Assembly (NCBI RefSeq): GCF_021028975.2
Contig: NC_059430.1
Span: 50,468,001 to 50,532,000 of the forward strand
Reading direction: 5' to 3'
Length of the DNA: 64,000 nt
Source: Sphaerodactylus townsendi
Lineage: Eukaryota
Shown here: in pieces, positions 15,809 through 41,125 of the stretch
How the letters are laid out: every line of letters begins with the position of its first letter
Numbering within the stretch: position 1 is the stretch's first letter
Program-made: the position numbers and the translations under genes
Notes under the pieces: model-generated
What the model was told of the DNA's origin: nothing
Databases searched by the model: none
Seen by the model: only the letters and a program-made list of their open reading frames with translations

Positions 15809-16804
15809 GTTGTCTTCCTTTAAAAAAATGGAAGTTGAAAAAATGTAGATATTTGTGATCTGTAACCAAGCTCCTTATCCCTTCCTCACTTTATTTCATA
15901 ATTCATGACATTTAGATTTGTTGAAGAGTATTAATTTGTAGCTGTGGGGTGAATAGATATACATTTACAAAAAAATGCCCCGTTAATAAAGAAATTTTGA
16001 AAATTCAAAATGACAAGGTTGTCACAGTAACTTTAACTTAATTAATGCATGGGTTGAGGTAGAGTAGAGGAGGCAGCTTGTCACAAAACAGTGAATGAAG
16101 TCAGTGGAGAGTTCTTAATAGCTTAGAAATTTGGGAGAAAATTCCTTCTTAAACTATTCAGCTGAAGTCTTGATCTCTTTTTCAAATTAAGTTGCTGGGT
16201 TGGTGAGTATTTACATATCTGCCATGTGTCTCTCATACGTTATTTCTTGTGGTCAATTTATAGAAAAAATCAAATCATTATCTGTCCATCTCCCTGCCAT
16301 CCAGCAGATACATTATAAAAACCTTCTGACCATAATGATGAAAGAGAGAGGAAAAATATACCTACATGGGTGGTTTCAAAAAAGCTATTAACAAGACACA
16401 TGAGGTTTCTCATTTGCATTGCTGCATTTAAAATAAAGAATATCCTTGTAAACACTGTGTTTCAGGGGGGATGGGTAGTAACTGTCTGTAGGAATTCTTC
16501 TGTTTCTTCTCACAGGTGCTTATCTTTGTGTGTGGCCTCTGAAGGCCAAGTGCTCCCTGTTCTCATAACTGTTGTAACTGCTAGTTCAGGGGTGTGGAGG
16601 GAGTGTGAATTATACTGTGGAAAGTTTGATTTGGGAATCAGAACTTTCCTTGCTGTGGTTCCTGATTCATCTTATGTCTTCAATAAAGAGATCTTTGTTT
16701 CAAACAAGTCTACTTATTGAATGGTCAAGTGAGTCTTGCACTCAACTTGGTATGAGGCATGTGGTTTGTTTTCATGTGATATTTTGTATCTGGTGGTGCA
16801 GTAG

Positions 16805-16990
16805 GACCAGTGTGATATAGTGGTTAAGAGTGTCAGACTCATATCTGGAAGAACAGGTTCAAATTCCCACTTGGGCCATGGATGACTTTGGACCAGTCAC
16901 ACTCTCTCAGACTTCCCTACCTTACAAGAGTGAAGTGAGGATAAAATGGGGGAGAGGAGAACTATGTAAGCCATTTTGGAAAAATAAATA
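16805..16990 (+). mobile_element. Older tRNA-derived SINE
   Basis: TAGTGGTTAAGAGTG...GGTTCAAATTCC A/B boxes. Confidence 0.65.
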
Positions 16991-18892
16991 GAGACAGAAA
17001 GAAATATGTCTGGGCACCTATGGTAGCTTTCAGCACTCTTGCTTGAGAAAATGACATCAAAAATTGCTGGCTGCCAGGGACTGGTGCTGAAATATGGGAC
17101 TAACTAAGGCTAAAGCAAGGACCACCATGCTCCATCCCTTTACCACCCCCTGCCTGCCACTTAATAAATAACACTGCAAGTTGCTAGAAATGGTCTGTTT
17201 ATCCAGGTGCATGTAAAATTCTGCTGTTCCAGGTTTCTGCCTGATGTTAAGGCAAAGATACACTATGTTTCTTTGTATGCACCTGGATAAACAGGAGTGA
17301 GTGAAATTGACAAGTGAATTTACTTTTGCAGGAGAAAATTGACAAGAGACTCCCACAGTAATAATTGTGTGTTACTACAGCTCTAATTTGTCAAAAAAGT
17401 GGGATTTTTTGGGGGGAGATACATGTTTCGGTTCCTTCAGGTAAAGACATCTGTTCCGGTAGGTTTTTTAAATTTGTTTTGCTTCCATTGTGTGTGGTAG
17501 TTCTCAATGATAGAAATGGAAGCTGAGAAATTTTTTGATTTGCTGCTTTAATGTAACAGCACAGTAACACTAGAGTGTCTATGCAAAAGAAAAAAGGGGG
17601 AAGGTTGTTCTTTTGCATCAAGAATGACATCCCATCACCATTAGAAGTAATACAATTTCAGCAATGGTATGTGGAATAAATGCAATGGAAAGGGCAAAGG
17701 GAAAAACAATGAGGGGAACAGAGGTGCACAGAATGATTTCACAGAAAACTTTTCCAATACAAATAGTTTGACTTCTGGGAAAATCTGTGATATGCTGTGC
17801 ATGTGGCAAAGGTCTCTGTCCCTTAGGAATTACAATCTTGAGGTGTTAGCTGGTAAATCTTTTTTTCTCACTCTTACCAGAGCCATTTGCATCTCTAAGG
17901 CCGTTTCCGCACGGGCAATCAATGACGTCGTGGAAACGGGAAAAGAAACGTCAGAACGAGAGCGTTCGCACGCGCAGCGACGGAGGTGCGCTGTTGCGCC
18001 ATCGCGAATACGCTTACCCGGCGCGAGGACACCGTATCCAAAAAATGCTTCGAAGCGCTCCTTTTCCATATGTGACGCACCGAAGCCGCAGTCGTGCGAA
18101 CCGGCGCCACGGAGGCGTTCTCAAACATGGCGCCTGCCAAATGATCTCCCGCAGTAGCGGCGGCCATATTGGGAAGGATGAACTGCTCCAGCGGCCATGA
18201 TGGTGAGGTCAGCAGCCACACTTTGACAGAGCTCCTCTTCAAGTGGCGTTGAGAGTCACGCATCCGCGCAGCTGTGAAGCTACATGATTGCACAGCTACA
18301 CAACCTCGAGTCTGAAGGGCGGCGAGGCGCCCCCTGGGCAGACAACGCTGCTGCCTTGATTCAGATCATGCATAACAGGACGCAAAGGTGGAGCCATGGT
18401 CTAAGACACTTCCCCTGTGCCCAATGGGGAGGGGGGAAAGTGTCTGTCCATCCCATTGTCACTTGAGGGCTTCCTGCCATTGGCCAGGAAGTTTGGAAAA
18501 ACTACCCAGCAGACTCTATTGCAGACGCACATCAGACACCACAGCATCAGGTGGATTTGGCTGGTGGCTCTGTGTGTTTGCCCACCCCAACAATGCCCAA
18601 TGAAAGGGCACCTGCCGAGCGGCAGCCAGGAAGAGGAGTCGCTTGGAGAGACAGGGAGACCCGTGACCTTTTGGAATTATGGGGGGAACCGCAAGTGCAG
18701 CGTTCTCTCGCTACGAGCCAACGCAACATAGATGTCTTTCAGCGGATAGCCCAGCAGATGACAGCTCGGGGCCACCGCCGGACAGCCATTGAGTGCCGCA
18801 CAAAAACAAAAGCCATGCGGTATGAATTCAAGCGTGTGCAGCAGCATAACCGAGGGACAGGCAATGAGAGAGCCACCTGTCCCTACTTTGAT

Positions 18893-19174
18893 GAGCTGCA
18901 GCGTATACTGAGAGTGGATGTGAGCATTCAGCCTGGACGAGTGGCAAGAACCTACACCCTGCCAGCCCCACAGAGGGGCAGAGGGGCAGCACGTTGCCAC
19001 ACCAGCACCACAGTACAGGAGGACAATTCAGAGGAGCTGCAGCGTATACTGAGAGTGGATGTGAGTGTTCAGCCTGGACGAGTGGCAAGAACCTACACCC
19101 TGCCAGCCCCACAGAGGGGCAGAGGGGCAGCACGTTGCCACACCAGCACCACAGTACAGGAGGACAATTCAGAG
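18893..19174 (+). repeat. 141-bp in-frame tandem duplication (47 aa) in Myb1 exon 1
   Basis: GAGCTGCAGCGTATACTG starts at 18893 and 19034. The two copies are nearly identical (ELQRILRVDVS[I/V]QPGR...EDNSE). Confidence 0.95.
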
Positions 19175-20309
19175 GAGGCACCCTCAGCTGCTGCAGGCAC
19201 CCCAGCACCCAGCAGCCCTGCAGACTCAGGTGAGAGAGGAGGTTCTGCCCTCCACCTTGTTAAACACAAACTGGCATCCCGGAATGGCTGCCTACCCCTC
19301 CCTCCCTGTGAATGCATGAACCATGGGAACCAGAAGCCACACTGAGTTCTACTGACTGCTGCTCCCCCGCAGCACAGCTGGCCCAGCTGATAAGTGCAAG
19401 TATGTGCAGGGCAACAGGGAGGAATGGGGCACGTCAGGGTCACTGCCAAGGCCACTGGCATGCTGCCAGCCTCTGCCTCACAGAGGTGTGGTGCTCCTTC
19501 CATCCAGCAACCCCCCTTAATGAAAGTCACTTACTGTGTCCCACAGACATAACTGCCACCCAAGAGACAGACCCTTGTGAAGGACCATCCACACGGCCAC
19601 CCTCAGTTGCCTCAGGTAAGTGGCCACCCCACCTGGCCGTAGCTGCAGAGGGGAGAAGGGCTTCCTGTGTGTGCCTCATAGAAGTACAAGGGGCTGAAAT
19701 GCACTTTGTCCCTCTCTCTGACAGGAGCCGCATCAGAGTCACCCACCCAGGGGGAGGATGAAGACCAGGAGGGGGAGGAGCAACAGAGAGATGAGGAGGG
19801 AGATGGTGGTTATGGGGAAAGGCCACTCAGACAGCCCCCGCAGCGAGGTAAATCTCCACAGATGTCTGTATGGGTGGGTCCAGGGAAAGGGGGGGAGATG
19901 CAACCAACAGCCCTCCATTTCTCATCAACAGTCGGTCCTAGACGACAGCAATCGGAATCACCACCTCCAAGGGAAGAATCCCCAGAGAGACGACTGGTCC
20001 CACAGCCTCCGAAGGGGTGCTGTCATGGCAGAGATAGGCCGTCAGTTGCTAGAGCACTGTGCAGCTGACGCAGACAACCAGCGGCTGGCTCAGGAAGCAG
20101 AGCAGGAGTGGCGGCAGGACATTTCTGACCAGATGCAGCTGGATCGTGAGACTTTCCTCCTCACAGCAGCCCGCACCCATCGGGCTTTCCTCCGCACAGC
20201 AGCCCGCACCCACGAGCTCATGGCTGAGCGGACAGAAGTCCTAAGGAGAATGACAGACCTCAGCCTTCAGCAGCAAGGTGCCCGTGTGTGTGGGCGTTGC
20301 CAAGCAGCA

Positions 20310-21800
20310 CTGGCCCCCCTTCACCTGAGCTCCTCAGCAGCAGCCAGCTCCCGCAGCTAATGACACCCCCATCCCCTGTGCGAGGCAGATGTACTCAGAG
20401 GAGGGGACCAGCTGGGCCCACTTGCAGCCCAGTGGCCACCCACAGCCAGCTCATGGAGCCAAGCCACAGCCACCTCCTGGAGGCAGCTTGCCCACCTTCC
20501 CCTGAGCTCCTTGAGTGCAGCGAGCCCCTGGAGCCACCCACTCCCCCACCCCTTGTGCGAGGCAAGCGAGGCCAGAGGAGGGGGGCGGCTGGATCCACTT
20601 CTGCCACAGTGCTCACCCACAGCCAGCTGAAGGAGCTTGCTCGACCCCCTTCCCCTGAGCTCCTCACTTGCAGCCAGCCCCTGGAGCAGGCTGCTCCTGC
20701 ACCCCCTGTTCAAGGCAAGCGAGGCCCCAGGAGGGGGGCAGCTGGACCCACTGCTGCCACAGTGCTCACCCACAGCCAGCTGAAGGAGCTGGCTCAGCCC
20801 CCTTCCGCTGAGCTCTTCACTTGCAGCAAGCCCCCGGAGCAGGCTGCTCCTGCACCCCCTGTTCGAGGCAAGCGAGGCCAGAGGAGGGGGGTGGCTGGAC
20901 CCACTTCTGCTGCAGCACTCACCCGCAGCCAGCTGAAGGAGCCTGCTCGACCCCCTTCCCCTGAGCTCTTCACTTGCAGCCAACCCCTGGAGCTGGCTGC
21001 TCCTGCACCCCCCCGTTCGAGGCAAGCGAGGCCCCAGGAGGGGACCAGCTGGGAAGGCTTCATCCACTCTGGTTACCCACAGCCAGATGGAGGAGGATGC
21101 TCGGGCCCCTTCCCTGGTGCTCTTTCAGTTGGCAGCCAGCCCTGAGCTACTGCCTGCACCCCCCCGTTCGAGGCAAGCGAGGCCCCAGGAGGGGACCAGC
21201 TGGGAAGGCTTCATCCACTCTGGTTACCCACAGCCAGATGGAGGAGGATGCTCGGGCCCCTTCCCCTGCGCTCTTCAGTTGCAGCCAGCCCCTGGAGCTG
21301 GCTGCTCCCGCACCCCCCGTTCGAGGCAAGCGAGGCCAGAGGAGGGGACCAGCTGGGAGGGCTTCATCCACTCTGGTTACCCACAGCCAGATGGAGGAGG
21401 ATGCTTGGGCCCCTTCCCCTGAGCTCCTCATTTGCAGCCAGGCCCTGGAGCTGGCTGCTCCCGCACCCCCCCTGCGAGGCAGGGTGGGCCAGCGGGGGGG
21501 GTCCACCAAGAAGCCTTCATGCACTCTGGTCACCCACAGACAGCTGCAGGAGACATCTCGGCCACCTTCTCCTGAGCTCCACACCTGCAGCTTGTTCCTA
21601 GACCTCAAGTAACACCCTCCCCCCATGCAGCGGCATGGTATGCTCAGAGAGGGGAATCAGCTAGCCCAGCTCCCTCCTTGCTGCCCACCCACAGCCAGCT
21701 GCAGGAGCCAGCCCAGCCCCCGTCCCCTGTCCTAGTTACCAGCAGCCAGCTCCTGAAGGCAGCCACGGCCCCTCCCCCAGTGCGGCATCGGCGTAGCCAG
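20310..21800 (+). repeat. ~153-bp minisatellite encoding a 51-aa Pro/Ser/Arg-rich repeat
   Basis: The GGCAAGCGAGGCC-type motif recurs near 20558, 20711, 20864, 21018, 21169, 21322 and 21475. Unit peptide is about PPVRGKRGQRRGAAGSTSATVLTHSQLKELARPPSPELLTCSQPLEQAAPA. Confidence 0.93.
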
Positions 21801-22045
21801 TCCCATGAGGTGGTTGGTGCTGCTACCCAGCTGCCCCAGGTGACAGGGAAACCAAAGGAGGAATGGGCCCGCTCCCCACCCACCAAGCGAGCCCGGAGCA
21901 CCCCACCACTTGCAAGGGGCGGTGTACGTGGCAAGGCTGGCCACCAGGGCAGCCAGGGCAAAGGACAGGGTGATGGGACAACAATGTGAGGGAGGGGGTG
22001 GTTGTGGTGGTGGTCAGATAATCCCTGTGAGGGCACATAACTTGA

Positions 22046-22051
22046 AATAAA
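22046..22051 (+). terminator. Putative polyadenylation signal of Myb1
   Basis: AATAAA about 57 nt after the last stop, followed by a GT/T-rich tract. Confidence 0.55.
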
Positions 22052-22698
22052 GTTACCTGAAAGAACCCCACCCTTGCTACTGTGGTTTCTGTTCTGCTAC
22101 AATGTGAGTGGAAGTGGGGCTTGTGAGTGGGTGCAGGGGCTGGTGAAGGGCAGGGACATTCTGATCAAAGGGGGGGCAGATTGGTGGCCCTTACATCAGT
22201 TGCTGCTCCTTTATGTGACTTTGGCCCATTTTTCCCTTGACAGATGGAAAATTGGCAATGAATCTGTGTTGTGCCAGGCAGGTCAGGTGTCAGCGAGGTC
22301 AGTGTTAAGCTTGGCCCTGCACCATTGTGACTGGGTCAGCATGCAAGGGAGGGGAGGGAGGGAGAGTCCCCACCCCCCCAAGGAGCTCCATGGAATCTCT
22401 GCACCATGCACAAGTGGGGCAGCTGTCTTGCTACTTGAGGGAAGGCTGGCCAAGCAGTGTAGCGAGGTCAAGGGAGAACTCCTGTAAGGAAGCGATCGTG
22501 GTGTGGTGGCAGTAGCAGTGGCATCCCTGGTGGCAGTAGTGATCCCAGATGGAAAAGGTGTTCATGCGATTCCCACCCTGCCTAGTGTGTGTTTGCACCC
22601 CCCCTGACTGGATGTGGAGATCATGTGAACCGAGCACTGGGGGCTGGTGGGTGCTGCAGTGACACAAAGATGAGCCTATTGTGAATGATTGAATAACT

Positions 22699-23175
22699 TT
22701 TATTAAGTGAAAACATTATCAACACAGGAAACTGCCACAGCATGCCCCAGACCCTCCCCACGAGGCTCCACAGCAGACTCCCCTGCCCATAGCAGCAAAT
22801 TCCCTCAACTCCCAACAACAAGCCCTACACCCTCCTACTCCTGGACTCCATTAAACAAATCCCCTCCGCTCTCCAACGCACAAAGTGCTGCAGACCCTTT
22901 CCACCCCCCCCCACAAACATCATGGACTCCCCACGAATGCCTCCCCCCCCCAACAAGGCCCTTGTGGCCACAGTGCCATTAGGGGCCAACTAACCTGGCT
23001 ATCTCAAAGATGCCGCATAAAACCCCTCTTTAGTCCCAATTGGTACCCCTCGCCCAGCTACTTGCGTGTTTCCTCTGAGCTGGGCGGGCAGACCTGTGGC
23101 AGGTGTGGGGGCAGCCACCCCACTCAGGTGCTCTTGTAGGGACACCCTGGGCACCGAGGATGGTGGACTCACAGC
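22699..23175 (-). pseudogene. Remnant 3' end (last-exon tail, 3'UTR, AATAAA) of a Myb2 paralog
   Basis: 23060-23170 aligns by eye with 30102-30210 (GGGCAGACCTG..CAGGTG.GGGGCAG..CACCCCACT). Peptide SPPSS...GLP is shared. AATAAA on - at 22699-22704. Confidence 0.7.
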
Positions 23176-23743
23176 CATGGTGCCTTGCCGCTCCCAGCTC
23201 CATCCAGGGGGGGGGGGATTTCCCCATTCATGTTCAAAAGCTCCAGCCACGCCTTTGCACATTGTGTTTTCCAACCGTTTTAATACTCCTATTTGGTTCT
23301 GCTTGGCCTGCAGGGGGTTTTACGAAGTACTGGCTTGAAACAGCACTAAACTTTCAGGTATTGGTCGGGGAAGTCTCCTGATGTTCCCACCCAGGTTTTG
23401 TGTGGCTTGGTCCAGGGGGGGTCCAATGGCATGCACTCTCAGTAAGGGTGCCCCCCATCCCCATTGTTGCCACTGGGGAGCTGTGAAGATGGTGCAACAC
23501 CTTTGCTTGGATCCATACATTTGGACCCCCCTGACCTGAACGATCACCAAACCTGGGTAGTATCATCAGGAGAGTCCCCCAATCAGTGCTCTGCTGAAAA
23601 GTTTGATGCTGCTTAGGGGTTAACCAGTGCACCCCTGACAGCAGCCACCCCTAATTTTTTCCATCGTTCTCCTTTTCAGATCCACTCCCTCCCTTTGTGG
23701 CATGGATTTACAGGGATAATCTGAGGTCCTAAATTTAGAATAT

Positions 23744-24010
23744 GAGGAAGAGTGTGGATCTATATCCCCCCCTTTCTCTACTGTAGGAGGCTCACAGGGG
23801 CTTACAATCTCCTTGCCCTTCCCCCCTCACAGCAAACACCCTCTGTGGTGGGTGGGGCTGAGAGAGCTCCGAAAAGCAGTGACTAGCCCAAGGTCACCCA
23901 GCTGGCGTTTGTGGGAGTTCACAGGCTTATCTGATTCCCCCAGCTGAGCCTACACAGCTCAAGAGGCAGAGCACAGAATCCAGGCAGGGTCCTGCAGATT
24001 AGAGTGCTCC
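23744..24010 (-). mobile_element. SINE inside the Harbinger (related diverged copies at ~26412-26620, ~26890-27065, ~31095-31300, ~33273-33480)
   Basis: CCAAGGTCACCCAGCTGGC and other blocks shared with 53805-54050. Confidence 0.8.
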
Positions 24011-24405
24011 TTCAGGGTGGGGGACGATCAACCCCCAAACAGCATTAATTTCACTGTTGTAAGTAAGGACCCCAGATTCTCCCTGTAAGGTAGACCTAGT
24101 TTAAAAAACCTTTGAAAGTGATGCTGTTTGGGGGTGGATTCCTGCATCACAGCTGCTGTCCCAGGGGATGGGGGGTGGGGGTGGGGGCCCAAAAATCAGC
24201 TTCTGCATCATGCTCCATTTCCCCTCCATGCCTTGGTCCAGAGGAGAGGGGCAGGGGAGGGCAGGGCAGGGGAGCTCCCATAGGCCATTCTGTAGGACTT
24301 GCATGCTATGCAGCAGGAACAGATCAGGCCGAGCCACTGGCACTCATGGCCCAGCCGCCACCCTCCCCCTATGGCACCGTGGCCGAGCTCTGAATAGATA
24401 CCCAG

Positions 24406-25813
24406 CTAGGGCCTCTCTGACAGCCTGCCCCTCTCGCCTGTGCGTATCATCCTGGGGGTTGTATGGGCGGCCAATGGAGGGATCTGCTGCTTCTTCCTGC
24501 TGGTGTGCTTCTTCTTCGCTAGAATTGGAGCGACCTGCTCATTGGGGAGATCTGGAGCTCTGTGGCCATGGCTCTCACACAGGTTGTGCAGCACCACGCA
24601 CGCCGCCATTACCCGAGGTGGCATTCTCGGTCTGACCCACAGACAGTTGAGAATGCATCTCCACCGCGCCTTCAGGCGGCCAAATCCATCAGCCTCCACC
24701 ACGCTTTGGCGCGGGGACAGATGTGAGTTGAAGTTTCGCTGCTGCGTTGGAAGGAACCCGGTAAGGTGTGAGCAGCCACGGCGCTGGGGAAAGCACCATC
24801 CTCAATACCACAGGGGGGTATGGACACGCCGCTGATTGTCAGCATGGGGTTTCAGGCAAGTAGATGCCCATGTCCATGGCTTGACAGAAGCAGTTCTAGA
24901 TGAAACACAAATGCATCATTGTTGCGAGCAGAGTAGCCAGTTTCAGCATTGATAAACATTCCGCGAGGTTGCCAGCAGGAGCTTGGAGGAAAAGTTTTTC
25001 GACACGATTAATGAGGCTGACCGGTGCTCCACCTGGGTTACAGATCCGATGACAGCCATCCACGGCCCCGATGCAGTGGGAAAGCCAAGGGCAGCAAAAC
25101 TAGCCATCACCTGTAGGGAAACAGACATTGGCACATAGGTTGGGGAGGTTGGCAGTACAGGGAGGGGGGATCTGCAGCTGCTGTTTAGTTGTAGTGGCAT
25201 AAGCATGTACAGCTCTGTCAGCACTTCCACAGCCATGGCAAACTCCAGGACACAGTGGCCAGTCCAACTCCAAACTGTTGGCCCACTTCACGATAGCTGT
25301 TGGCACTTGCTAGGTACCACAAGGCCATGGCCACGCGCTTTAGCATGGGAATGGCAGGACGCATATTGGTGTCTTGTCGTTCCAAGTGTGGACGCAGGAC
25401 ATCTGCGAGGTAAATGGCTGTTGCCTTGGCCATCCTGAAGTTTTGCACCCACTCCTCATCTGTCCAGACTGTCATTACAAGCACATTTAATTATGCCATT
25501 AAAGGTTTATATATATATATACAAGCACATCCCACCAGGTGTGGCTCTGGGGACCTATCCAATGGCGGGGGGTGTTGGGAACACTTGCGATAGCAAACCA
25601 GCGCAATATTGCGCGCCTACGGGGCCTGCGGTGCACTGTGGTGTCAGATTGAGTCACTAGCCCTTCGGTAAGATGGCGGCGTAGCCTCCCCACCAGACGT
25701 CGCATCAGCTGGCCTCTGCGTGCCATGAAGGTGTCTGTGGTTGAGGCGCCCTGCTCCTGCTCATCGTGCAGTACTTCCTGCCGCACCACCTCTCCCAGAT
25801 CCATGTCTGCCAT
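24406..25813 (-). pseudogene. Harbinger transposase (DDE_Tnp_4, HARBI1-like), disrupted
   Basis: Motifs reconstructed across frameshifts: WWDVLVMTVWTDEEWVQNFRM, RVAMALWYLASANSYREVGQQFGVG, GFPHCIGAVDGCH, GYSARNNDAFVF, DGAFP..WLLTPY, VVE..FGRLKARWRC and ACVVLHNLCE. Intron acceptor (ctacag) at 25111-25112. Confidence 0.92.
25476..25530 (+). mobile_element. Ultra-short 5'-truncated LINE 3' tail inserted in the transposase
   Basis: 11-bp TSD TACAAGCACAT (25476-25486 and 25520-25530) around TTAATTATGCCATTAAAGGTT(TA)n. The same TATGCCATTAAAGGTT ends the LINE near 60745. Confidence 0.85.
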
Positions 25814-25938
25814 GCAGACAGCAGCTAGCCGTATGGTTCCCTGGTTCCACTGAACACCTGAGCACGGAATGGAAACTGGTGGGAGGCGGCCAGACTACAG
25901 ATTGGGGGACGGACGAGCCCTCAGAATAGTTGCCTTGG

Positions 25939-26030
25939 CCAATCGTTCTGCTTGATGTCTGTGACATCAGTCTGCCACAACTTTGTGAGTGTTTAGCCCG
26001 GACAGGGCGGAGCAACATGCAGCATCCGCA
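25939..26030 (-). promoter_or_regulatory. Putative transposase promoter module, copy 1 (CpG-decayed)
   Basis: CCAAT at 25939 and TGACATC at 25962, upstream of the transposase ATG at 25813. Confidence 0.5.
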
Positions 26031-27259
26031 GCATTTTGTTCGGGATGGCAGCAGCAAACTGCTAAGGTGACTCTCATAATGATAATGACGGGTTTGCCTT
26101 AGGTTTGCTTCCGGGGCAACAATTCTATGGACTGCAAAACATGTACTCACCATCCCCTATTGTGTCAAATGGGATTTCAGAGAAGATAGGGACTGCACCT
26201 TTGAGGGTCCATTACTGGGGAGTCCATGACACAAACCTCACCAAATTGGTGCAGGCTCATTAGGAGAGTATTCTGCATATAGCGGCACAGTTTTGTAATT
26301 CCAGCTGACCAATTGCACCCTGCCAGCAGGCACAACCTGAAAATCTCCATGTTAGATCTTTTACATCCAGTCCTGGATGTAACGTGAGGATTTCAGTTCC
26401 TCAGCTTAGCAGAAGAAGAGATAGGATCCACCCCCCCCTTCTCTCCCACAGAGGATCCAAGAGACAGGCAATCTCCTTGTCCCAGCCAAACCCCACCTGT
26501 AAGGGAGGTGGTGATGAGAGACCTGGCATAATCTGTGTATGGGCCAAGGTCACCCAGCTGGCCTGTGTGGGAGTGCACAGGCTGAGCTGAATTCCCCAAA
26601 TACACATGTGCAGTGCAGTCATGTTAGCTGGGAGCAGAAACATGTTCCTAAGCATTGTAATGTCCCTGCTCTGAAACACTGCATCACTTTGCAAGTTCCA
26701 TTGCTTTCCCCACCCCCATCCCCTGTGCGAGGCAAGTGCGCTCAGAGGAGGGGGGTGACTGGGTCTGCTTTGTCCACGCTGGCCACCCACAGCCAGATGA
26801 AGGTGGATGTGTGGGTCCCATCCCCTGAGCCCTTCACCTGCAGCCAGTGCGTGGAGCTGACCAATCCACCACGAACATGGGCTTCCAATCACCTTTCCCT
26901 TCCTCCCCTCACAACAAGCACCCTGTGAGGTGGGAGGGGCGTAGAGAGCTCCGAGAAGCTGCGACTAGTCCAAGGATACCCAGCTGGCGTGTCTGGGAGT
27001 GCACTGGCTACTGTGAATCATCCAGACCAGCATGTACAGCTCTGTCAGCATAGCCCTAAACCACTAAAGCTGTCACTGTGCCAGTGATGCCGTGTCAGGG
27101 TGGGGGATGAGCCATCCCCAAACAGCATCAATGTCCATGTTGTGCTGTCTGGAGACATGGCATTGTCCCTTTAAGGTGGCGTTAATGTAGGAGTTAGGAC
27201 TGTCCAGGTAACATAATATTGGCAAAGATGCTGTTTGAGGGTGGACTGTAGCATCACAT

Positions 27260-27394
27260 NNNNNNNNNNNNNNNNNNNNNNNNNNNNNNNNNNNNNNNNN
27301 NNNNNNNNNNNNNNNNNNNNNNNNNNNNNNNNNNNNNNNNNNNNNNNNNNNNNNNNNNNNNNNNNNNNNNNNNNNNNNNNNNNNNNNNNNNNNN
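27260..27394. other. Assembly gap (N)
   Basis: Run of N inside the Harbinger. Confidence 1.
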
Positions 27395-27900
27395 CCTGCA
27401 GACATATGCCTCTGAAGGAGTGGTGCCAGGGGTAGAAGTGTGAAGAGCATGGCCACGCCGTCGGAGCTTCAGACAGGCCCCCCCCCTTCACATGTGTCCC
27501 TGGTGATTTCAGTGCATGGACAAGCACCTTTCACAGATCCCTCTTGCCTATGCAGATAGTGGCTGCCCATACAAGCTGCGGTGTCACTGGTGACAAAACT
27601 GGGACTGACAGGAGCAGGGAGGAGAGCCAGACTGAGGGGGGGGGGGCAGCCAGAACATCAAGCTAGTCACGCGCATGGTCGCAGGCGCGTACCGGCGGAG
27701 GATTGGGCGACCGCCCATCCGAAAGAGAGGCGGTGCTGCCTCCCCCACAGAAGGCTCATCAGCTGGCCGCTGTGTGCCATGCAGGTGTCCGTGGCCACCC
27801 GCACTTCGTACTGCTCCTGCATGCCTGCGATCCCTGCCTGCTGGAGCATCTCTCCCTTATTCACGTTGCCCAACCAGATGGCAACTCTCCATATGATTAC
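27395..27900 (-). pseudogene. Second, degenerate transposase 5' remnant
   Basis: TDTCMAHSGQLMSLLWGRQHRL matches TDTFMARRGQLMRRLVGRLRRHL of the main transposase. Adjacent DNA is homologous to 34230-34420. Confidence 0.7.
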
Positions 27901-27998
27901 TAGTGCCACTGGGCACCTGACCAGGGACGGAAAACAGCTGGGGGGAGAGTGGATGACAGATTGGGTGAACAGTCGAGGCGGCAGGACACTCCCCTCTG

Positions 27999-28095
27999 CC
28001 AATCATGCTGCTGAGCAGCCGTGACGTCGGGCTGACGCGGCTTCGCGAACGCGCTGCTCCGACAGGGCGAAGCGACACGCCGCTCCCACAGCGCG
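27999..28095 (-). promoter_or_regulatory. Putative transposase promoter module, copy 2
   Basis: CCAAT at 27999 and TGACGTC at 28022, then GCGGCTTCGCGA. Confidence 0.5.
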
Positions 28096-29034
28096 TTTTT
28101 TGACCAAGCAGTGCCAAACTTCTAGTGAGTGTTTGGGGGGCCCTCTTGAAGATACTCACTGCAAGTGGTGAGGTTTGATTTAGGGTAGCCGAAGGTATGG
28201 ACTCCCAAAGGGGGTGTCCCTATCCCCCATTATTCCCAATGGGAGCTATTGGGAGATGGGGGCTAAGGTTTTGAAGGTCCATAACTTCGGCCCCCCTGGA
28301 CTAAACTGCACATAAGTTGGGGGGTTCCATAAGGACAGTCTCCTAACGATCTGCTGGAACTGTGGTGCTGATATGTCTAACAATGTGTACGAAACCAATG
28401 AAGAGCACAGCGCATACAGACAGTTCAATTCGTGAGACCTTCGAATCAGGATGAGTAAGCAGAGAAGGAAATAGCAGTAATAATTACATGGCACAGAAGT
28501 CAAGCACAACTAGCCACTAAAGCTAGTCAATCAGCCAACCCTTATTGCCAGACCTACATCGGGGGCAATTCTCACTCCCCAAGGTCACGGGGGATCCACG
28601 TTGCTTCACATATTTATTTTCATTTTAATAATATGGTATCCTGGGGGGGCGGTGGTGGGCATTTGCACATGTTCTTGGGAAGCATCCACAGATTTTGGAA
28701 CAACTGCTGAGTGGCCTCGTGCCGATGTGCCCACATTTAGTGGATTCCGACAGAATCCGACATAGGGAGGTGAAAAAGAAATGGTGGCCACGGAATTTCC
28801 CCAAGCTTGTTAATCAGGCTGTGCGCCGCATCCAGAGTGGTTCGCCGGAGGCTCGAGTCAACATTCGAGAGTACAGTTGTCGACCCCGCAAATGGCGGCG
28901 CGTACCTCACGTGGCCGCGTAGCTCCAGTGCGTGTGTACGTTTCCCGTTTTGGGTTCAAATGGGCCAATGGAGTTTCTGGAAAGTTAACTGCCCAAAGCC
29001 CCCCTTCCGTTTTCCCTTTATTCTCTGGTCTGCC

Positions 29035-29147
29035 ATGGAAGGAGCTAGACATGGAGTGGCCTGGCAGCCGGAGGAACTGAACATCATGTTCAGCACGATC
29101 CGGAATTGCGGATACGCCGCACTGTTAATGGGCAGCCTAGCTCTACG
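29035..29147 (+). pseudogene. Truncated Myb/SANT-like 5' fragment (Myb3), inverted paralog of Myb2
   Basis: MEGARHGVAWQPEELNIMFSTIRNCGYAALLMGSLAL compared with Myb2 GVYWQAQEEVTIL..RVKDREDAPWLSLMASTGL. Upstream TTGGGTTCAAATGGGCC (28950-28966) matches the reverse complement of 32701-32717 at 16/17. Confidence 0.65.
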
Positions 29148-29685
29148 GTAAATATGGTGCTAGTGAAAGTGGAATGGGGAAAGGTGACCTATGTTCCATG
29201 CTCCTTGGATTACAAGGTCCTAGATGGGTACAATAACTGCACGACAGATGTGATGTCACCGTGCTTTTCTGTTCTAATCAGAGAGAGGCTAATCCTTGGC
29301 AGCATCTCCTTACCCATGTTAAAGGACATGAAATATGGGGGTAAAATGAGTCCACTGTGTTCCCTGTGGTGTTTCCCCTATTGTCTAGCACCAGCCTAAT
29401 TGGGTGAGTGGTGCATCCACTGCACAATGAGGGGTGGAGAATTGGTGCCAGAAAGGGAAGGGGAGGGGACCCAGCATCTGGGCATGGCCCTGCCACCCTA
29501 GCGGAGGGAGGGGGAGGGGAGGGGCTTGTGAGTGTGTGCAGGGACTGTGGAGATGCAGGAACACAAAGATGAGACAAATGCAAACAGTTAAAAAGTTTTA
29601 TGTATTGTCGAAGGCTTTCACGGCCGGAATCACTTGGGTGCTGTGTGGTTTCCAGGCTGTATGGCCGTGTTCTAGCAGCATTCTC

Positions 29686-29728
29686 TCCTGACGTTTCGCC
29701 TGCATCTGTGGCTGGCATCTTCAGAGGA
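29686..29728 (-). ncRNA. Minimal hammerhead ribozyme motif (antisense arm)
   Basis: Reverse complement of TCCTGACGTTTCGCC...GGCATCTTCAGAGGA gives the same intact core. Confidence 0.75.
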
Positions 29729-29753
29729 TCATGGAGTTTCTGAAATCTTCAGA

Positions 29754-29796
29754 TCCTCTGAAGATGCCAGCCACAGATACAGGCGAAACGTCAGGA
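29754..29796 (+). ncRNA. Minimal hammerhead ribozyme motif
   Basis: TCCT-CTGAAGA-TGCC-loop-GGC-GAAAC-GTC-AGGA: CUGANGA and GAAA cores, GUC cleavage triplet, short helices I and II. Confidence 0.75.
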
Positions 29797-30101
29797 GAGA
29801 ATGCTGCTAGAACACGGCCATACAGCCCGGAAACCACACAGCACCCAAGTTAAAAAGTTTTATTGAACACACACAATGACAAAAGCACAACTTCCCCAAC
29901 AGTCCCTGATACCCTCCCCCAATCCCACAGCACAACCCCCCTAACCCACAACAAGTCCCACCTAGCCCACAACAGCCCACCCTAACCCTCCAGAACCCCC
30001 AACACACAACAACAACACCCTAACCCACAACAAGCACTTGCCCACAACTATTGTGCAATGTCCTTGCCCCAGTGCCCCTCTGTCCAAAATCCCACACGCC
30101 A

Positions 30102-32625
30102 TCACTGCGAGTCCTCCGAACTAGAGGGCAGACCTGCCAGGTGCGGGGCAGGCCCACCCCACTGTGGGGCTTCTGGTGGCGCCCCTGGAGCAGAGGAGGG
30201 AGGACTGGCTGGCACTGTGCTGGCCTCCTCCAGGTCAGAGGGCACAGGGGTGGTGCTGCAGTTGGTGGAGGAGGAGGCAGCCTGCTGTGTCCCACTGCCT
30301 GGTCCTGAGCTTAGGACCAGCGGTTGCTCTGTGGGGGGTGGAGGGGAACGATCCCCTGCCACCTGCCGCCGCTCTACCACTGCCAGCCGCTGCTCGACCG
30401 CTGCCAGCCGCCGTCCCATGCGTGCCAGTCACCGATCCATGTGAGCCACTGCAAAAGAGGAGCATAATTAGCTGGGGCAGCTCTTCCCAGCTGCCCATGG
30501 CCTGGCCAGCTGGCATTGTTGACAGTCATTCCCGCTTCCCAATGTGACTTCCATCACTGTGCCACACCCAGAGCAGGCTGCAGCAGAGCAGTCAGAGGGA
30601 GTCTGTGCAATCTGTTCTTACACAGCTGGAAGCAGTTGCAGTGCTGCTGCTGTGGTTGGTGGCCTGCTGCTGCCATTCCAGATGGCCCTGGAGGGGAGGA
30701 AGTTGAATGTCACATTTACTGGGCCACAACACTTGTACATGGGGGGTCGGGGGGGGACATGATCCTCCATGTCATGGCCTCTGCAACTGGCTGGAGCAGG
30801 GATGCTGTTGTACCCATGCACGGGGGAGGGGCCACAACCCCACCTGCCCTCAGGTCATGACTGCCCCTCCCATAGCCCTGTTGTGGCCACAATAGGTATA
30901 TGAGAAGCTGAATGAGCTCAGTCATGGCACACTCCCTTGACCTACCCTTCTCTCTCCCTCCCCTCTGGGCAGCAGCATAGATGGAAGATGGAAGATAGTG
31001 CACATTCCCCCCTTGGCCACTGTGTGGCTGGCATCCACCCCCCCCTCCCACAGCATCACTTTCAAAGCTTGTGCACCCAGGGAGTCATTGCTACTGTGGA
31101 TTAGTGGTGAAGGGCAGGTGCACTCTGAGCTGCAGGATCTGGTTTTGTTTCCCTGCTCTGCCACCTGAGCTGTGGAGGCTCATCTGGGGAATGCACATTA
31201 GCCAGTGCCTCCCACACACAGTTGCTGGGTGACCTTGGGCTAGTCACAGCTTGTGGGAGTTCTCTCATCCACACCCATCTCACAGGGTGTGTGGTGTGAG
31301 GGTGCAGGGTCAAGGAAAGAAAGGGGGGATGTCACTCCAAACTACTACTGCGCTTGTACACTGAGGACCTCGGTTTGTCATTTTCAATCCATGGGAATGG
31401 GAGTGTCTGCACAAAAGTAATATGTGTGAATTTGGATGGTGCCTGCTTTCAGGGGTGCAATTGTTCAGCTACAAGCACCAAATTGCCAGGTTATATGTGA
31501 GGGACTCTTCTAAGGATAACACAAAGGTTTGGTGAAGTTTGGTTCAGAGGGCGCACAGGTATGGACTCCCAAAAGTGTTGTCACGATCCTCCATTAGCTC
31601 CCATTTGAAAAAATGGAGGTCAGTGGCACCCCTTTTGGGAGTCTGTATCTGTGGACCCTCTGAACCACAGCTCACCAAATCTGGCTGCCATCATCAGGAG
31701 GTTCCCCCTGAAAAATCCCTGCAGTGTAGTGCAACTGGTTCAAGCAATGCAGGCCAGGCAAAATGCACTTCAGAAAAACAGCCAAATGGTGGCCACACCT
31801 CCAAATGGAGAGGATGGCTTCACATGTGAAGGGGGGAGCATTGAAAACCATGAATTCCCCCCCACCTGAGCACATGAGCTGAAGGTGCGCATGTGCGAGG
31901 CTGCATGTCACCGCACCTGCACACACGCACACTCACGACACCGCATCCCCCCGCAAGCGCCCTGCTTACCTGGTTGCTGGCTTGCCTCCACTGGACGCTC
32001 TTCCATAGAACTGGAAGAGCTCTGGTGTGGGGCCGCAGCCTCGCCTCTCTCCTCGCCTGGCGACACGGAGTCCCCACCAGAGGAGATTTCTGCCTCCTGG
32101 CCCTGGACTGGGCCTTCCAGTGGCTCCCGTGGGGGTGCCAGGGCGTGGCGTCGAGCGGCGGCGCCTGTCGGAAACAAATAACAATCAGATGGGATCCTAC
32201 ACAGGGAACCCACCTGCGCACAATCGCGTGTGCGCACGGTCGCGAGCTCGAGTAAACGCGCACTCACCTTCAGGCCGATGGTCCACCCAACGGGGCTCCC
32301 CAGCCAGCCGCCACAGCTGGCGCATGGCAGCAAAATGCGGGGGCCAAGCGGAGCGGCGAGGGTGGCCTTCATAGGCCTCCATTGCAGAGAAGAAGTCCCT
32401 TTTGAGGGCCTTCCACTTGGTGCAGGCTTGCACCTCTGTACGGTGGAAGCCTGCACGCTGGAGTGCCCTCGCCACCGCCCGGAACGCCCGTCGATTGGGC
32501 AGTCCCGTGCTGGCCATGAGGGATAGCCAAGGCGCGTCTTCGCGGTCCTTGACGCGCGCGTGAGGCGAGGATGGTGACCTCCTCCTGCGCCTGCCAGTAG
32601 ACTCCCACGCCTGGGTGCACCTCAT
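30102..32625 (-). pseudogene. Second Myb/SANT-like gene (Myb2), spliced
   Basis: GVYWQAQEEVTIL...NRRAFRAVARALQRAGFHRTEVQACTKWKALKRDFF...PPHFAAMRQLW. GT-AG exons 32625-32268, 32164-31970, 30687-30622 and 30448-30102, all phase 1. The last exon is coiled-coil-like (RRLAAVEQRLAVVERR) with one TGA, probably from CGA. 5' frameshifts. TATATA at 32667 and AATAAA on - at 29859-29864. Confidence 0.82.
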
Positions 32626-33584
32626 GGCTGTCCCGGGAAATGGCTGGGAAAAGGGAAGGGACCCTCTATATAGAGAGTAGATCTGGCCCTGTAGCAATTC
32701 GGCCCATTTGAAGCCAACAGACTTCCAGCGGCTACGGCAGCCTCAGAGGGACTCCTTTTTAAAAATCACGCCGCCATGGGGATGCGCTCGCAGCCCTCGC
32801 GAATTCCCACGCCATCAAGGCAAGAGCCGCGGAGAGGGCGCACAGATCCCTCCTCTTCGGCTGCGGTGACGCACCCCTGTTTCCCGAAAAGAAATGAAAT
32901 ACACACAACGCTAAAAGTAGTTTGTAGAAATTGTCATTTGCACTTAGTACAGCCAAGGGTGTGCATTTTCGCCCCACAGATCAAAAGCACCACTCAGGCC
33001 CCCACTTGGCATACTCTGCAACACCGCCGCTGGAGCCACAGCCAGGAGATCAGGCTGCCCCAATGCCAGTCATTGGATGGCAGCAGCCCACACCCTTTGT
33101 TGCTGGTGGCCAGCTCTGAAGCGATACCCAGGTAGGGCATTTCTGACAGCCTGCTCCTGACACCTGTGGGTGTCAACCTGGGGGTTGTACAGATGCCCAT
33201 GTGGTGGCATAGGCACATCTTCCTGATGCTGCCCTGCTTCTTCAGTGTAGCAGTATAATCTATCAATATATAGAAGAAGAGTTGGATTTATATGCGCCCT
33301 CCATTTCTGTCCTGCAGGAGACTCAAAGGGGCTGATATTGCCCTTCCCCCCTGGCATAACAGACCCCTGTGAGGGAAGAGGTGGTTGCCTGAGAGAACTG
33401 AGAGAGGCTGTGTATGGGCCAAGGTCACCCAGCTGGCATGCGTGGGAGTGCTCAGCTGAAGCTGCATGTCCCAGATACACATGTGCAGCTCCATCAAGTT
33501 AGCAGGGAACAGACACCTGTTCCTCAGTTTTGGAATGCCCATGCTCTCCAACACCACAACATCACTTTGCCATTGGATGCTGTT

Positions 33585-33940
33585 TTTCGTAAGAACTGCT
33601 CTCCAGCGAACTATAATTCCTATCGAAGTCGCCGTCAGCATGGCCAATTGGCCATGCTGGTAGGCTGATGGGAATTGTAGTTCCCGAACATCTGGAGAGC
33701 CGCAGGTTCCCTACCAGTTGCAGTAGACTTCCGCGTTTTCCGATAGCGAACTGATAATCATCAAGTTTCGTCAGCATGGCCAATTGGCCATGCTGCAGGG
33801 CGATGGGGAATTGTAGTCCTGAACATCTGAGAGCCAAGAGGTTCCTGGCCCTGGCGTGGGGAGTAGGGACACCGGCTCAGATGTTTTAGGAACGCTAATT
33901 CCCATCAGCCTCTCTGTCAGCATGGCCAATTGGCCATGTG
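33585..33940. mobile_element. About three tandem, garbled copies of the palindromic hAT MITE
   Basis: Repeated CAGCATGGCCAATTGGCCATG and GGGAATTGTAGT motifs shared with 43001-43148. Confidence 0.7.
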
Positions 33941-34476
33941 ATGAGCTGATAGTAGACCTGGCCTCGACATTCTACCTGGCGATGGTCTTTATTCCTAGGC
34001 AGCATCAATGTCCACATTTTGCTACCTGGGGACATGGGATTTTACCTCTCAGGTGGCCTTAGCGGAGCAGCTCAGACTCTCCAGTTGACACACCATTGTC
34101 AGTAATGCTGTTTGAGGGTGGCCTGCAGCAACACAGCAGCTGCCAGGGGGAGGGGCAGGGTAGGGCAGGGCAGTCTCCACTCCCTGCCAGCAGAGTGATG
34201 TTTTTTAGGAGCTGGCCCAGGGTTGTGGCCAGGATGGCCACACCTTTGGAGCTTTGAGAAGTTTGGTCACTTCCCCCCCTCCCCCGCCCCTTAAGTGTGT
34301 CTCTGGTGATTTCTCTGAATGGTCCAGCACCTTCCCCAGATTCGTATAGGCTGCACAGACAGTGGCTGCCCATACAAGCCGTGGTGTCACAGGTGACATA
34401 AACTGGGACTGACAGTAGCTGGGAGGGGAGGCGATGACAGCTGGGGGTGGCCAAAACTTTAGGGTAGTCACGTTGG

Positions 34477-34575
34477 CCAATCGCGCTGCTGTGCGGGCAT
34501 GACGTCGGCCCTGCGCGGCTTCGCGAGTGCGCAGCCGCAACGGAGCGTAGCAAGAAGCCACTTCTGCAGCGCCTC
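34477..34575 (-). promoter_or_regulatory. Putative promoter module, copy 3, in the right subterminal region
   Basis: CCAAT at 34477 and TGACGTC at 34500, then GCGGCTTCGCGA. Same 23-bp spacing as the other two copies. Confidence 0.5.
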
Positions 34576-37064
34576 CGTGCGAACTGGCACATTTCTCGCG
34601 CGGACTCGCGGACGTTAGCAGCTCCGGGCCTTTCAAGGTCTGTGCGAACGCTTTTTTTTTCGAGAGGCGTCAGCCGATTTCTCGGTACGCTCATCTGGTT
34701 AAGTGCGCTGCTTTCTCGGCCGTCGCGGAAACGGCCTTCCGGGTTTGAAAGTACTCTGCTTGTAGATCAATGACTCAGCCTCTGTATTTTGCCTCTTGGC
34801 ATTTGCCAACTTGCAGTAAGCTTCCTGGACATAGGAAATAATATAGACATGGTCTCTAGAGTGGAAGGCTCATCTTCACACAAGTTGTTAATTAAGTCTC
34901 ACCTGGCACCAATATACTTTCCTTTAGGCACTGCAATGTCTTTACATAGCCTGTTAACTAAGGGGATCCATCTTTTAAAGCTGTTTTATGGTCTTCTCAT
35001 AGTCTGAGGACTGTTTTATCAATATCAGTTTATATGCTCTATTTTGTTTGTGTTTTTATGCCCTGGCTTGGTTTTTGACATTTTTATTTACTTGTTTTTA
35101 TTTCACTTCATTGACTTTATTTGTTTTATTGGCATGACTTGTTTTTATTGACTTTGAAAGGAGTTTTTCTTTATTGTTTGACTTGTGAGCTGTCTTGCAT
35201 AAGACTACAAAGTTAACATACAGATTGTTAACATTAATAAATAAAAGCTGGACAATCTTGCTTAATTTACACTGCAATCCTAAGTACACTTGAATCCTTC
35301 TTCTTGCTGCCAAATGCTACCATATTAGAAGTAGCTTAGTCCCTGACAAAAAAGGTGAGAAAATCTGAAAAGCTTGATCAATTAGAGGTTTCCCTGTCTT
35401 GGTGTTACTGGAAGGTGTGGGTGCCCATTGCAGCCATTATTGCGTATTCTCTTGAATTATATTCCCAGTTCTCTAACCTAGGGTATTCTTTTGCTTTCCA
35501 ATTTGCTGCACTCTAGCTTTTGTCAAATATCAAAAACAGTTCTTCTGAGTTTCTTGAAATGTTCTTTGGTAATATGCCTAGTAGCTCAGTCTTGGCGAAT
35601 TTTTGCTTTTCCCTCCCCATTTTTCTGAATGACCATTACATTCAGAAACCACCAACTTTATTGCACTTTCAATATTTTCCTTTGTAGCATTCTTTGTACA
35701 ACAAATTGTAGCACTTCCACTGACACCATTTGGGAATATAATTACCGTGCTCACGTCACTGTCACAAGATGGGAAATAATGTATTTACATACTCCCCATT
35801 ATATTTTGTTCAAGGAAACACCCTATAATTTTTCAAAATGCATTTCACATGGATCAAGAGTTACCAGGAAAATAAGATCACAACTCAGTTGCAAAATGAG
35901 CACATTAACCACAAGGCTATCCTTTCTCTTTGTTTGTTATCCAGCATAAATAAGAGAGGAAAGCAGTCTCTAATTGATCTTTTGATTTTTTTTCTTTTTA
36001 GGTAGCAAAAAGAACTAATAAAGAAAAGCAAAAGCAATGCATTAATTGTAAGAGAGGGTTCCTTTCATGAAGTTTCCCTTAAGAATGGAATTGACTGGGC
36101 ACATCTCTCTTAAATTCAATACAAGCATGGAAATGAAGGCAATTAGGAATTTGGAAAATGGAATGAACTGCTTTCCGTCCACAGTTAGGATTTCTATCTT
36201 GTCTCCTGGACAACTGCACTGATACAGTTATTAGAAACTGTTAAATTAACTAGTAGTTGATAGATTAACGAGAAGATACTAATTCATGACCAGACAAGTG
36301 GCACCCAGGGACATAGGTTACCCCATGACCCTCTGGCAGGTATGCCACTGGTTGCCTGTTAGTGGCAGGAAGAAGGAACATCTATGGAGATCTCTGGAAC
36401 AATATTCTTCTTTGCTGTATGGAAATGGACTTATGTGCTGAATGTTATTATCAAGAAGCTCACCAGAAATGCTGAGATAGTACAATGTGTATGTAAAATT
36501 ATAATTAGATTCTAGATAGACTTACAGTTACATCCGAGGTGGGTGGAATCTGCTGCTGGGAGCTGCTTGGGCCACCGCTGGCATATTTGCCCTCACCAAG
36601 GCAGTTGCCCTGGTATTGGGGTGGATCCACTGACAGGTGGCTGCACAGCCCTCCATGGCGGTAGGATGCGGCACTGAACGCCACACCAGCATCCGTACAC
36701 CCATGATACCAGTGTAGTGGGGTAGTCTGGGAGTGTGGCCAGGGGAGGAACCAACAGTAGTCAGCTTCCACCCTGCTATTGCCGTGTTCCACTGGCAACC
36801 AGGGCTTTGAATGTATGACACCTTTATGGTGGTGTGAGTTCATTAAGCTCAGTGGGGGCTTTCCAGAGGTAGAAAGGCTTTTTTGCATTTTTATCCTTCC
36901 CATGCCACTGGAAAGCCCTTTTGGGAATGACAGGCCAGTATAGCTGTGGCACTGCAACCTGGCACCCAGCCTTTTGGATGGGGCTGCCCATCAGGTTTTT
37001 GGTTTTGTTTTCCTTGTGTGGACTGGGTGCTTTATAGTTTGTGGCACTCTGTGAACTAATAAAT

Positions 37065-40884: not shown

Positions 40885-41125
40885 GGGGTGCTGTGTGGTT
40901 TCCGGGCTGTTTGGCTGTGTTCTAGCAGCATTCTCTCCTGACCTTTCACCTGCATCTGTGGCTGGCATCTTCAGAGGATCTGATAGTAGGAAAGCAAAGC
41001 AAGTGGAGTATGAAAGGAAAGCAAGTGGAGCATTCAGGAGAGAATGCTTCTAGAACATGACCATACAGCCTGGAAACCACACAACACCCCAGTGATTCCG
41101 GCCGTGAAAGCCTTCGACAATACAC
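40885..41125. mobile_element. Short Penelope-like insertion
   Basis: 13-bp TSD TGATGTGGTCATT (40872-40884 and 41126-41138). Same family as 29602. Hammerhead core mutated (GAAAG). Confidence 0.82.

Follow-up and report, generated by a model that had tools for sequence, protein, structure and literature searches.

Does one DNA-binding subunit recognise the ends of a Harbinger transposon, or do two, and do some of the Myb/SANT gene pairs found in host genomes descend from elements that carried two Myb genes? Harbingers are the textbook two-protein DNA transposons and gave rise to host genes of vertebrates and plants, among them HARBI1, NAIF1, MSANTD1-4, ALP1/2 and HDP1/2, and both questions are raised by a second conserved Myb gene in an element of the gecko Sphaerodactylus townsendi. 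The element occupies positions 17899-34736 of a stretch of 64,000 nucleotides (contig NC_059430.1, forward strand, 50,468,001 to 50,532,000), referred to here as the window, whose coordinates are used throughout except where another locus is named. We read it as a decayed copy of a large three-gene PIF/Harbinger element whose gene trio is conserved and whose two Myb proteins are probably both used by the element, a reading to which we assign a probability of about 0.85. The block is one decayed insertion, and its family carries a DDE_Tnp_4 transposase and two paralogous Myb genes, type A (Myb1) and type B (Myb2), inside a single pair of terminal inverted repeats (TIRs).

The insertion and its sister copy

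The block spans about 16.8 kb and has a guanine-cytosine (GC) content of 0.51-0.65, compared with 0.40 in its surroundings. At its ends lies an exact 12-bp inverted pair, GGCCGTTTCCGC at 17899-17910(+) and the reverse complement at 34725-34736(-), and the GC step, from 0.40 to 0.55-0.65, falls on both members. By chance alone a 12-mer inverted pair is not rare within 64 kb; the pair is taken as real TIRs because it coincides with the GC step and with the limits of the homology shared with a second copy of the element, so that the 12-bp TIRs claimed in a preliminary description of this DNA stand. On the left, which is the Myb1-side end, the homology to the second copy stops 1 bp outside the 12-mer, which is 16 bp long in that sister copy. 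At the right end, on the side of Myb2, the perfect match breaks off early because of a 1-bp insertion after base 12.

The sister copy, L002, is one of two S. townsendi loci (L001 and L002) on CM037617.2, where the predicted proteins P0007 (Myb2) and P0012 (transposase) lie together. Its TIRs, at 3102 and 17317-17328, are 16 bp long and are flanked by a perfect 3-bp target-site duplication (TSD), TGT, which gives an element of 14,227 bp. From one TIR to the other, the order is transposase 5′ and 3′ fragments, Myb2, transposase, a Myb2 3′ fragment, and then, on the other strand, the 153-bp repeats and Myb1. L002 and the window element align in the same order at 82-96% identity, falling to 71% in the last Myb2 exon, and their flanks are unrelated. 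The reading frames of L002 are intact: the transposase P0012 has two exons, 458 amino acids and a full DDE_Tnp_4 domain (expectation value, E, 1.5e-27), Myb2 (P0007) has four exons, 315 amino acids and a match to the Pfam family Myb_DNA-bind_4 (PF13837, E 4e-12), and the Myb1 open reading frame (ORF) is uninterrupted. No other intact transposase of the family is annotated in S. townsendi.

Within the window copy, only Myb1 exon 1 is still intact. The ORF at 18467-19342(+) matches PF13837 with E 1.2e-17, and exon 1, counted from the first methionine, runs from 18593 to 19342 with the Myb/SANT domain at 18641-18907. It is 95.9% identical to L002 at the DNA level, and the sole indel is a 141-bp insertion, seen in the window as an in-frame tandem duplication at 18890-19171. 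The remainder of the gene is placed at 19543-21800(+) by tblastn of P0001 and P0002, by repeat families D1-D3 and by the protein sequences, and comprises exons at about 19543-19617 and 19718-19849, a coiled-coil segment at about 20202-20285 and an array of 153-bp repeats. Three predicted S. townsendi proteins (P0001-P0003, 76-91% identical) continue Myb1 in the same way, through short exons, the coiled-coil segment and the array. The array itself, at 20228-21800, is open in several frames, and gene models read its 51-residue repeats as the Myb1 C-terminus. A solo 153-bp unit precedes the transposase on its upstream side both here (26711-26859) and in L002.

The transposase at 24347-25804(-), recognised by Pfam and by tblastn of P0012, is a pseudogene of a gene that has two exons in its intact relative. 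Its DNA is 91.7% identical to the gene for P0012 (L002 10001-11519), with about 17 indels that include changes of +44, -10 and -75 bp. The DDE_Tnp_4 domain is in frame only for its last third (24583-24753, E 4.4e-7, profile positions 102-158), and the N-terminal half remains recognisable by tblastn at 82-89% identity to P0012. The plus-strand Myb1 and minus-strand transposase named in the preliminary description are thus both present, the latter in decayed form.

A Pfam scan of 140 stop-to-stop ORFs between 21.6 and 35 kb returned, besides the one DDE match, only one further Myb match, in the ORF at 32200-32742(-) (PF13837, E 6.3e-10, profile positions 28-89 only). This match belongs to Myb2, which lies on the minus strand at 30108-32625 in four exon blocks (32625-32257, 32171 to about 31990, 30691-30620 and 30464-30108), recovered by tblastn of P0004 (98%), P0010 (87%) and P0007 and in agreement with the four-exon NCBI model LOC125431295 (P0007). 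The domain survives as a remnant at 32314-32508, and insertions of 1, 7 and 6 bp put the gene out of frame in helix 1 of the domain. The gene had been described as a complete four-exon Myb2 on the minus strand: the four exon blocks hold, the completeness does not. Nor does it lie between Myb1 and the transposase, as had been expected, but between the transposase and the right TIR.

Two further Myb2 remnants, also claimed beforehand, were recovered, and both are short. The first, at 29035-29145(+), encodes 37 N-terminal residues that align by tblastn to residues 1-37 of P0007 (54% identity) and are detected by a type-B hidden Markov model (HMM; E 4e-7), with no Pfam match. The second, at about 23000-23214(-) and downstream of the transposase, is seen at the DNA level only, where it is similar to the last Myb2 exon of the sister copy and its flank; its L002 counterpart (12671-12807) matches residues 269-315 of P0007.

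With its reading frames no longer all intact, the window copy falls short of an autonomous element, and it cannot move alone because its transposase is riddled with indels, its Myb2 is frameshifted and it has no TSD. It has in addition gained nested high-copy repeats and an extra transposase 5′ fragment. The window copy is an ordinary dead insertion, and the interest lies in its family.

The gene trio in other lizards

The trio also occurs in Eublepharis macularius. There, five loci on four chromosomes (L004-L008) encode a transposase, P0023, with about 50% identity to P0012, and share an 11.95-kb segment at 99.88-99.93% identity, with the element at about 9637-21583 of each locus. The five copies have imperfect TIRs of about 15 bp, and each has its own 3-bp TSD (CAG, AAA, CTG, TAT and CTG). 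With such near-identity between its copies, this Eublepharis family 1 is very young and probably active at present. Each copy carries the transposase and two head-to-head ORFs that match Myb_DNA-bind_4, one at 16353-16880(-) with E 2e-17 and one at 17390-17887(+) with E 3e-11. Of these, the minus-strand ORF corresponds to Myb1 (52% identity, E 2e-44) and the plus-strand ORF to Myb2 (43% identity, E 9e-21), compared with 25-33% for the cross pairs. A second Eublepharis family (L010) has about 70-82% DNA identity to the first and the same layout.

Beyond Eublepharis, the transposase, MybB-type and MybA-type ORFs lie side by side in Heteronotia binoei (L011), where MybB directly follows the transposase. 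In the iguanian Sceloporus undulatus (L012), the transposase is followed about 3.5 kb on by a head-to-head A/B pair. In this pair, at L012 9482-10345, MybA(-) and MybB(+) have less than 200 bp between their starts, a spacing that suggests a shared bidirectional promoter. A and B are arranged head to head and a few hundred bp apart in both Eublepharis and Sceloporus.

A maximum-likelihood tree of 15 domains splits A from B with 100/100 support, and each clade holds sequences from Sphaerodactylus, Eublepharis, Heteronotia and Sceloporus. Since A and B form separate clades that each extend across these hosts, the A/B duplication is older than these element families. MybB lies further from the Pfam model (E 1e-10 to 1e-14) than does MybA (E 1e-15 to 1e-18). 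Among proteins at large, a B-type domain profile finds 177 cluster representatives at E of 1e-10 or below, which include proteins of Gekko, Rhineura, Anolis, Zootoca and teleosts. Three of the predicted teleost proteins (P0113 from Megalops, P0121 from Denticeps and P0117 from Centroberyx) are 850-1600 amino acids long with 7-8 tandem B-type Myb/SANT stretches, and are either genuine multi-Myb proteins or gene models that span element arrays.

Between the two Eublepharis families all three genes are under strong purifying selection. For exon 1 of MybB, nonsynonymous divergence (dN) is 0.09 and synonymous divergence (dS) 0.98, a ratio of 0.09; the corresponding proportions (pN and pS) are 0.14 and 0.77 for exon 1 of MybA and 0.17 and 0.82 for exon 2 of the transposase. 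The ratios between the window copy and L002 are 0.42 for Myb1, 0.26 for Myb2 and about 1.4 for the transposase N-terminus, a pattern expected when one of two copies is decaying.

These elements share with PIF/Harbinger transposons a DDE_Tnp_4 transposase, a separate Myb/SANT gene, TIRs, a 3-bp TSD (in the sister copies) and dispersed near-identical copies. They depart from the canonical two-ORF plan, with its one Myb gene and length of a few kb, in having two Myb clades and lengths of 11.95, 14.2 and 16.8 kb. A TWA (TTA or TAA) target preference is a usual, not universal, PIF/Harbinger feature. The preliminary description expected a TWA target here too, but the six clean TSDs (TGT, CAG, AAA, CTG, TAT and CTG) are all 3 bp long and none is TAA or TTA. 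Its central claim, that of a three-gene Harbinger lineage with two divergent Myb proteins, fared better, being upheld by the sister copy, by two families in Eublepharis and by the Heteronotia and Sceloporus loci, together with the fully supported A/B split. This recurrence, the A and B clades that each run through the hosts and the purifying selection on all three genes show the trio to be a conserved architecture and no local accident.

Readings of the trio

What might an element do with two Myb proteins? By analogy with Harbinger3_DR and with the HARBI1-NAIF1, ALP1-ALP2 and HDP1-HDP2 pairs, in which a Myb-like protein contacts both the transposase and the subterminal DNA, both are probably needed by the element. 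Most likely, A and B would act as a co-expressed pair, possibly as a heterodimer formed through their C-terminal helical regions, that reads subterminal motifs and brings the transposase to the ends; where the genes are head to head, they would share a promoter region. Two 8-mers, GTTCGCAC and ATGACGTCG, are common to both subterminal regions and are candidate binding motifs. Fold-based pairing of the transposase P0012 with the Myb2 protein P0007 gave a score of 0.56, compared with 0.27 for the best control; at least 15% of contacts are shared between runs, and the partner has a predicted local distance difference test (pLDDT) value of 48. Of 78 solved complexes, 51 reach the mark used for this pairing, as do 2 of 108 mismatched pairs, and scores of 0.60 or below take in only 5 of those 78 solved complexes together with all 4 mismatches that passed.

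An extension of this scheme would be that squamates host an old and still active lineage of giant Harbingers, in which an A/B Myb heterodimer, produced from a head-to-head pair, reads two non-identical subterminal regions, and that the "domesticated" HARBI1-like ORFs of lizards are in part such elements. We regard this as possible but doubtful. If true, the lineage would have been overlooked since its ends lie 12-17 kb apart and its TSDs are not TWA, and it would be a cut-and-paste system with three components, found in nature, from which paired Myb-gene domestications could plausibly have come.

Several observations weigh against the reading of the window element as one member of a conserved three-gene family that uses both its Myb proteins. 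The perfect TIR of the window copy is only 12 bp long, and a TSD, TWA or any other, was sought with TIR lengths of 12-14 bp and none was found, the flanks being TAA on the left and TTC on the right. The 2.7-kb block at 27395-30100 is without a counterpart in L002, and an assembly gap marks its start. The identity between the window copy and L002 is a mosaic (71-96%), which likely points to recombination between subfamilies. In RNA runs from a related or the same species, the few matching reads are confined to the last Myb2 exon, and there are no splice joints. The gene order in Sphaerodactylus is unlike that in the other hosts, and Heteronotia and Sceloporus are represented by one locus each, at which the element ends are undefined. 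That the element needs either Myb protein is drawn by analogy, and the predicted transposase-MybB contact is a hint, the prediction being weak and the fold of the partner uncertain. Finally, Repbase and Dfam may already list such elements.

The main rival, which we consider unlikely although it deserves to be taken seriously, accepts the family and questions the role of MybB, which would be kept by the element while standing outside the transposition machinery. It could be a regulator, such as a dominant-negative protein that competes for the ends and keeps copy number down, or it could act on chromatin or against silencing and so protect the element's promoter. The greater divergence of MybB than of MybA from the Pfam model suits such a role, as does the ability of canonical Harbingers to transpose with one Myb protein. 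Plant Harbinger-derived Myb proteins also work in chromatin complexes (PMC9392472), and the copy numbers of the giant elements appear low, with the one intact annotated transposase in S. townsendi. Purifying selection on MybB is, on the other hand, as strong as that on the transposase, MybB is head to head with MybA in two hosts, which suggests co-expression, and the fold prediction lends weak support to a contact with the transposase. Each of these points remains compatible with a regulatory role.

The element also contains fragments of its own genes. The transposase 5′ region is present three times in the window, all on the minus strand. One copy lies at 25660-26032. An extra copy of upstream sequence and first codons at 27478-28094, absent from L002, is similar to 25660-26032 and 34282-34572 and is matched in tblastn by residues 1-61 of P0012 and 223-301 of P0006. 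The third, at 34282-34596, adjoins the right TIR, is 94.6% identical to L001 8428-9028 and is similar to 27478-28094 and 25660-26032. A transposase 3′ fragment at 33047-33246(-), directly upstream of Myb2, is matched by residues 401-451 of P0012 (tblastn, 55% identity) and by blastn to 24321-24517. The transposase 5′ and 3′ fragments upstream of Myb2 and the Myb2 3′ fragment downstream of the transposase indicate an old internal partial duplication of a transposase-MybB unit, which re-ordered the genes in the Sphaerodactylus family. In the predicted protein P0008, the transposase tail runs directly into the Myb2 start.

Three minus-strand ORFs, at 25502-25894, 27670-28002 and 34062-34766, had been candidates for Myb genes and were rejected, since they are copies of the transposase N-terminus or 5′ region. 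Among S. townsendi entries in UniRef, P0008, P0009 and P0006 are gene predictions in which parts of the transposase are joined to Myb2, or Myb2 to a 5′ fragment of the transposase, and are annotation chimeras that arise from the internal duplications of the element. P0126, also from S. townsendi, has a B-type Myb domain inside an isoform of a "zinc finger protein with KRAB and SCAN domains 2-like", possibly as a fusion or a domestication. Two further loci, L003 in S. townsendi (P0015) and L009 in Podarcis (P0053), gave no A- or B-type Myb within 10 kb with two small HMMs, which is a weak blank.

A more local rival concerns the assembly. The gap, a run of N at 27260-27394, falls outside all exons, in a repeat-rich spacer that separates Myb2 from the transposase; because it sits in this spacer, no gene call hangs on it, and ORFs that run through the N are artefacts. 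That the 2.7-kb block 27395-30100 was misplaced, or collapsed from another copy, is improbable in our view. In its favour, the gap falls exactly where colinearity with L002 breaks, and the region is made of multi-copy sequence. Yet the sequence on either side of the gap follows the order of the paralogous segment 34000-34472, at anchor offsets of 6877 on the left and about 6803 on the right, which fits continuity across a short real gap without proving it. In addition, the S. townsendi predicted protein P0006, from another locus, joins Myb2 exons to a transposase 5′ fragment that is 67% identical to 27709-27945. A copy with such an order probably exists elsewhere, and the block, with its transposase 5′ fragment of the same kind, is probably genuine. 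A second assembly gap, at 46061-46215, adjoins a copy of repeat b (45785-46059).

Repeats account for much of the remaining spacer. Self-comparison with blastn identifies interspersed repeats a, b and c at 23333-24156, which also occur outside the element and of which b reaches a word depth of 1e5-1e6 in DNA runs; a second a-b-c block, with the solo 153-bp unit, lies at 26150-27259. An inverted a+b repeat at 31116-31745 occupies intron 2 of Myb2, and repeat b and a palindromic repeat are nested at 33268-33938, where depth reaches 1e5-1e6 in DNA runs and RNA runs, too, have many matches. The segments 23333-24156, 26150-27258, 31116-31745 and 33268-34140 had been considered as Myb2 remnants and were rejected, being interspersed repeats that are also found outside the element and are extremely abundant in DNA and RNA runs. 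Over the window as a whole, very high-copy repeats with a word depth of 1e5-1e6 in DNA runs lie at 31048-31375, 33180-33835, 53791-54056, 11550-11837, 45785-46059 and 43005-43146; these are also abundant in RNA-seq from a related or the same species, and one is built around the palindrome CAGCATGGCCAATTGGCCATGCTG. A nested hairpin at 29600-29850 (inverted repeat I1), resembling a miniature inverted-repeat transposable element, has 99-nucleotide arms that are 98% complementary in the element copy. It is found both inside and outside the element, with copies at 40880-41124 and 54936-55143 and at L002 18686-18898.

The block could also be a composite, in which a two-gene Harbinger of Myb1 and transposase lies beside or is nested with a separate Myb2 element and the 12-bp ends are paired by chance. 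Inverted 12-bp matches are indeed common by chance, the window has three transposase 5′ copies and transposase fragments that adjoin Myb2, and the window copy is without a TSD. However, L002 has the same content within the same TIRs and a perfect TSD, the five Eublepharis copies move as one 11.95-kb three-gene unit, and the trio recurs in four other element families. An internal copy of the TIR was sought within the window element and within L002, and none was found. Two of the outcomes that the preliminary description had named as damaging to its claim turned out in its favour: Myb2 has no nested element of its own, since there is no internal TIR and L002 keeps the same order inside the same TIRs, and the other copies do not lack Myb2, which is retained in L002, in the five Eublepharis copies and in the other families. 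The composite is largely refuted, and we consider it very improbable. Least credible of all is a cluster of domesticated host genes with no transposon, as proposed for Anolis Harbinger ORFs that lack TIRs or TWA TSDs (Novick et al. 2010, PMC3014272), given the TIRs and 3-bp TSDs, the multiple dispersed copies with unrelated flanks, and the decay of the window copy, which is unexpected for a host gene.

Comparison with known Harbinger systems

How does a three-gene family of this kind compare with the systems already described? In the literature, Harbingers figure as elements a few kb long with two ORFs, and a full-text search, with Repbase and Dfam entries outside its scope, found no two-Myb Harbinger described. 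The canonical vertebrate Harbinger, for which zebrafish Harbinger3_DR may serve as the example, is reportedly the one treated by Kapitonov & Jurka in 2004 and Sinzelle et al. in 2008. The gecko elements resemble Harbinger3_DR in their DDE_Tnp_4 transposase, a trihelix-type Myb/SANT gene, short TIRs, a 3-bp TSD and intron-containing genes. They differ in having two Myb paralogues, a length of 12-17 kb compared with a few kb, and TSDs that are not TWA.

In plants, the PIF/Pong/Ping elements need a Myb-like ORF1 protein together with the transposase (PMC2836001). Unlike the gecko elements, these have one ORF1, a length of about 5 kb and a TTA/TAA TSD. The host-gene pairs HARBI1-NAIF1, ALP1-ALP2 and HDP1-HDP2 offer a further parallel, in that a Myb-like partner binds the transposase-derived partner (PMC9392472). 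These pairs, and MSANTD1-4, have the same two folds as the gecko proteins, but are single-copy host genes without TIRs, whereas the gecko element is mobile, as seen from its Eublepharis copies, and has two Myb partners. Intact proteins and ends suited to a direct assay are available in the Eublepharis family.

The comparison closest to home is with another squamate. In Anolis carolinensis, a few Harbinger ORFs have been called domesticated, as they have no flanking TIRs or TWA TSDs (Novick et al. 2010, PMC3014272). Those ORFs and the ones described here are alike in being squamate HARBI1-like ORFs (442-466 amino acids) of low copy number with no TWA-flanked short TIRs nearby. Unlike the Anolis ORFs as described, those of the geckos lie inside TIR-bounded, TSD-flanked elements of 12-14 kb with two Myb genes, which suggests that reptile Harbinger ORFs regarded as TIR-less and domesticated may belong to very large elements.

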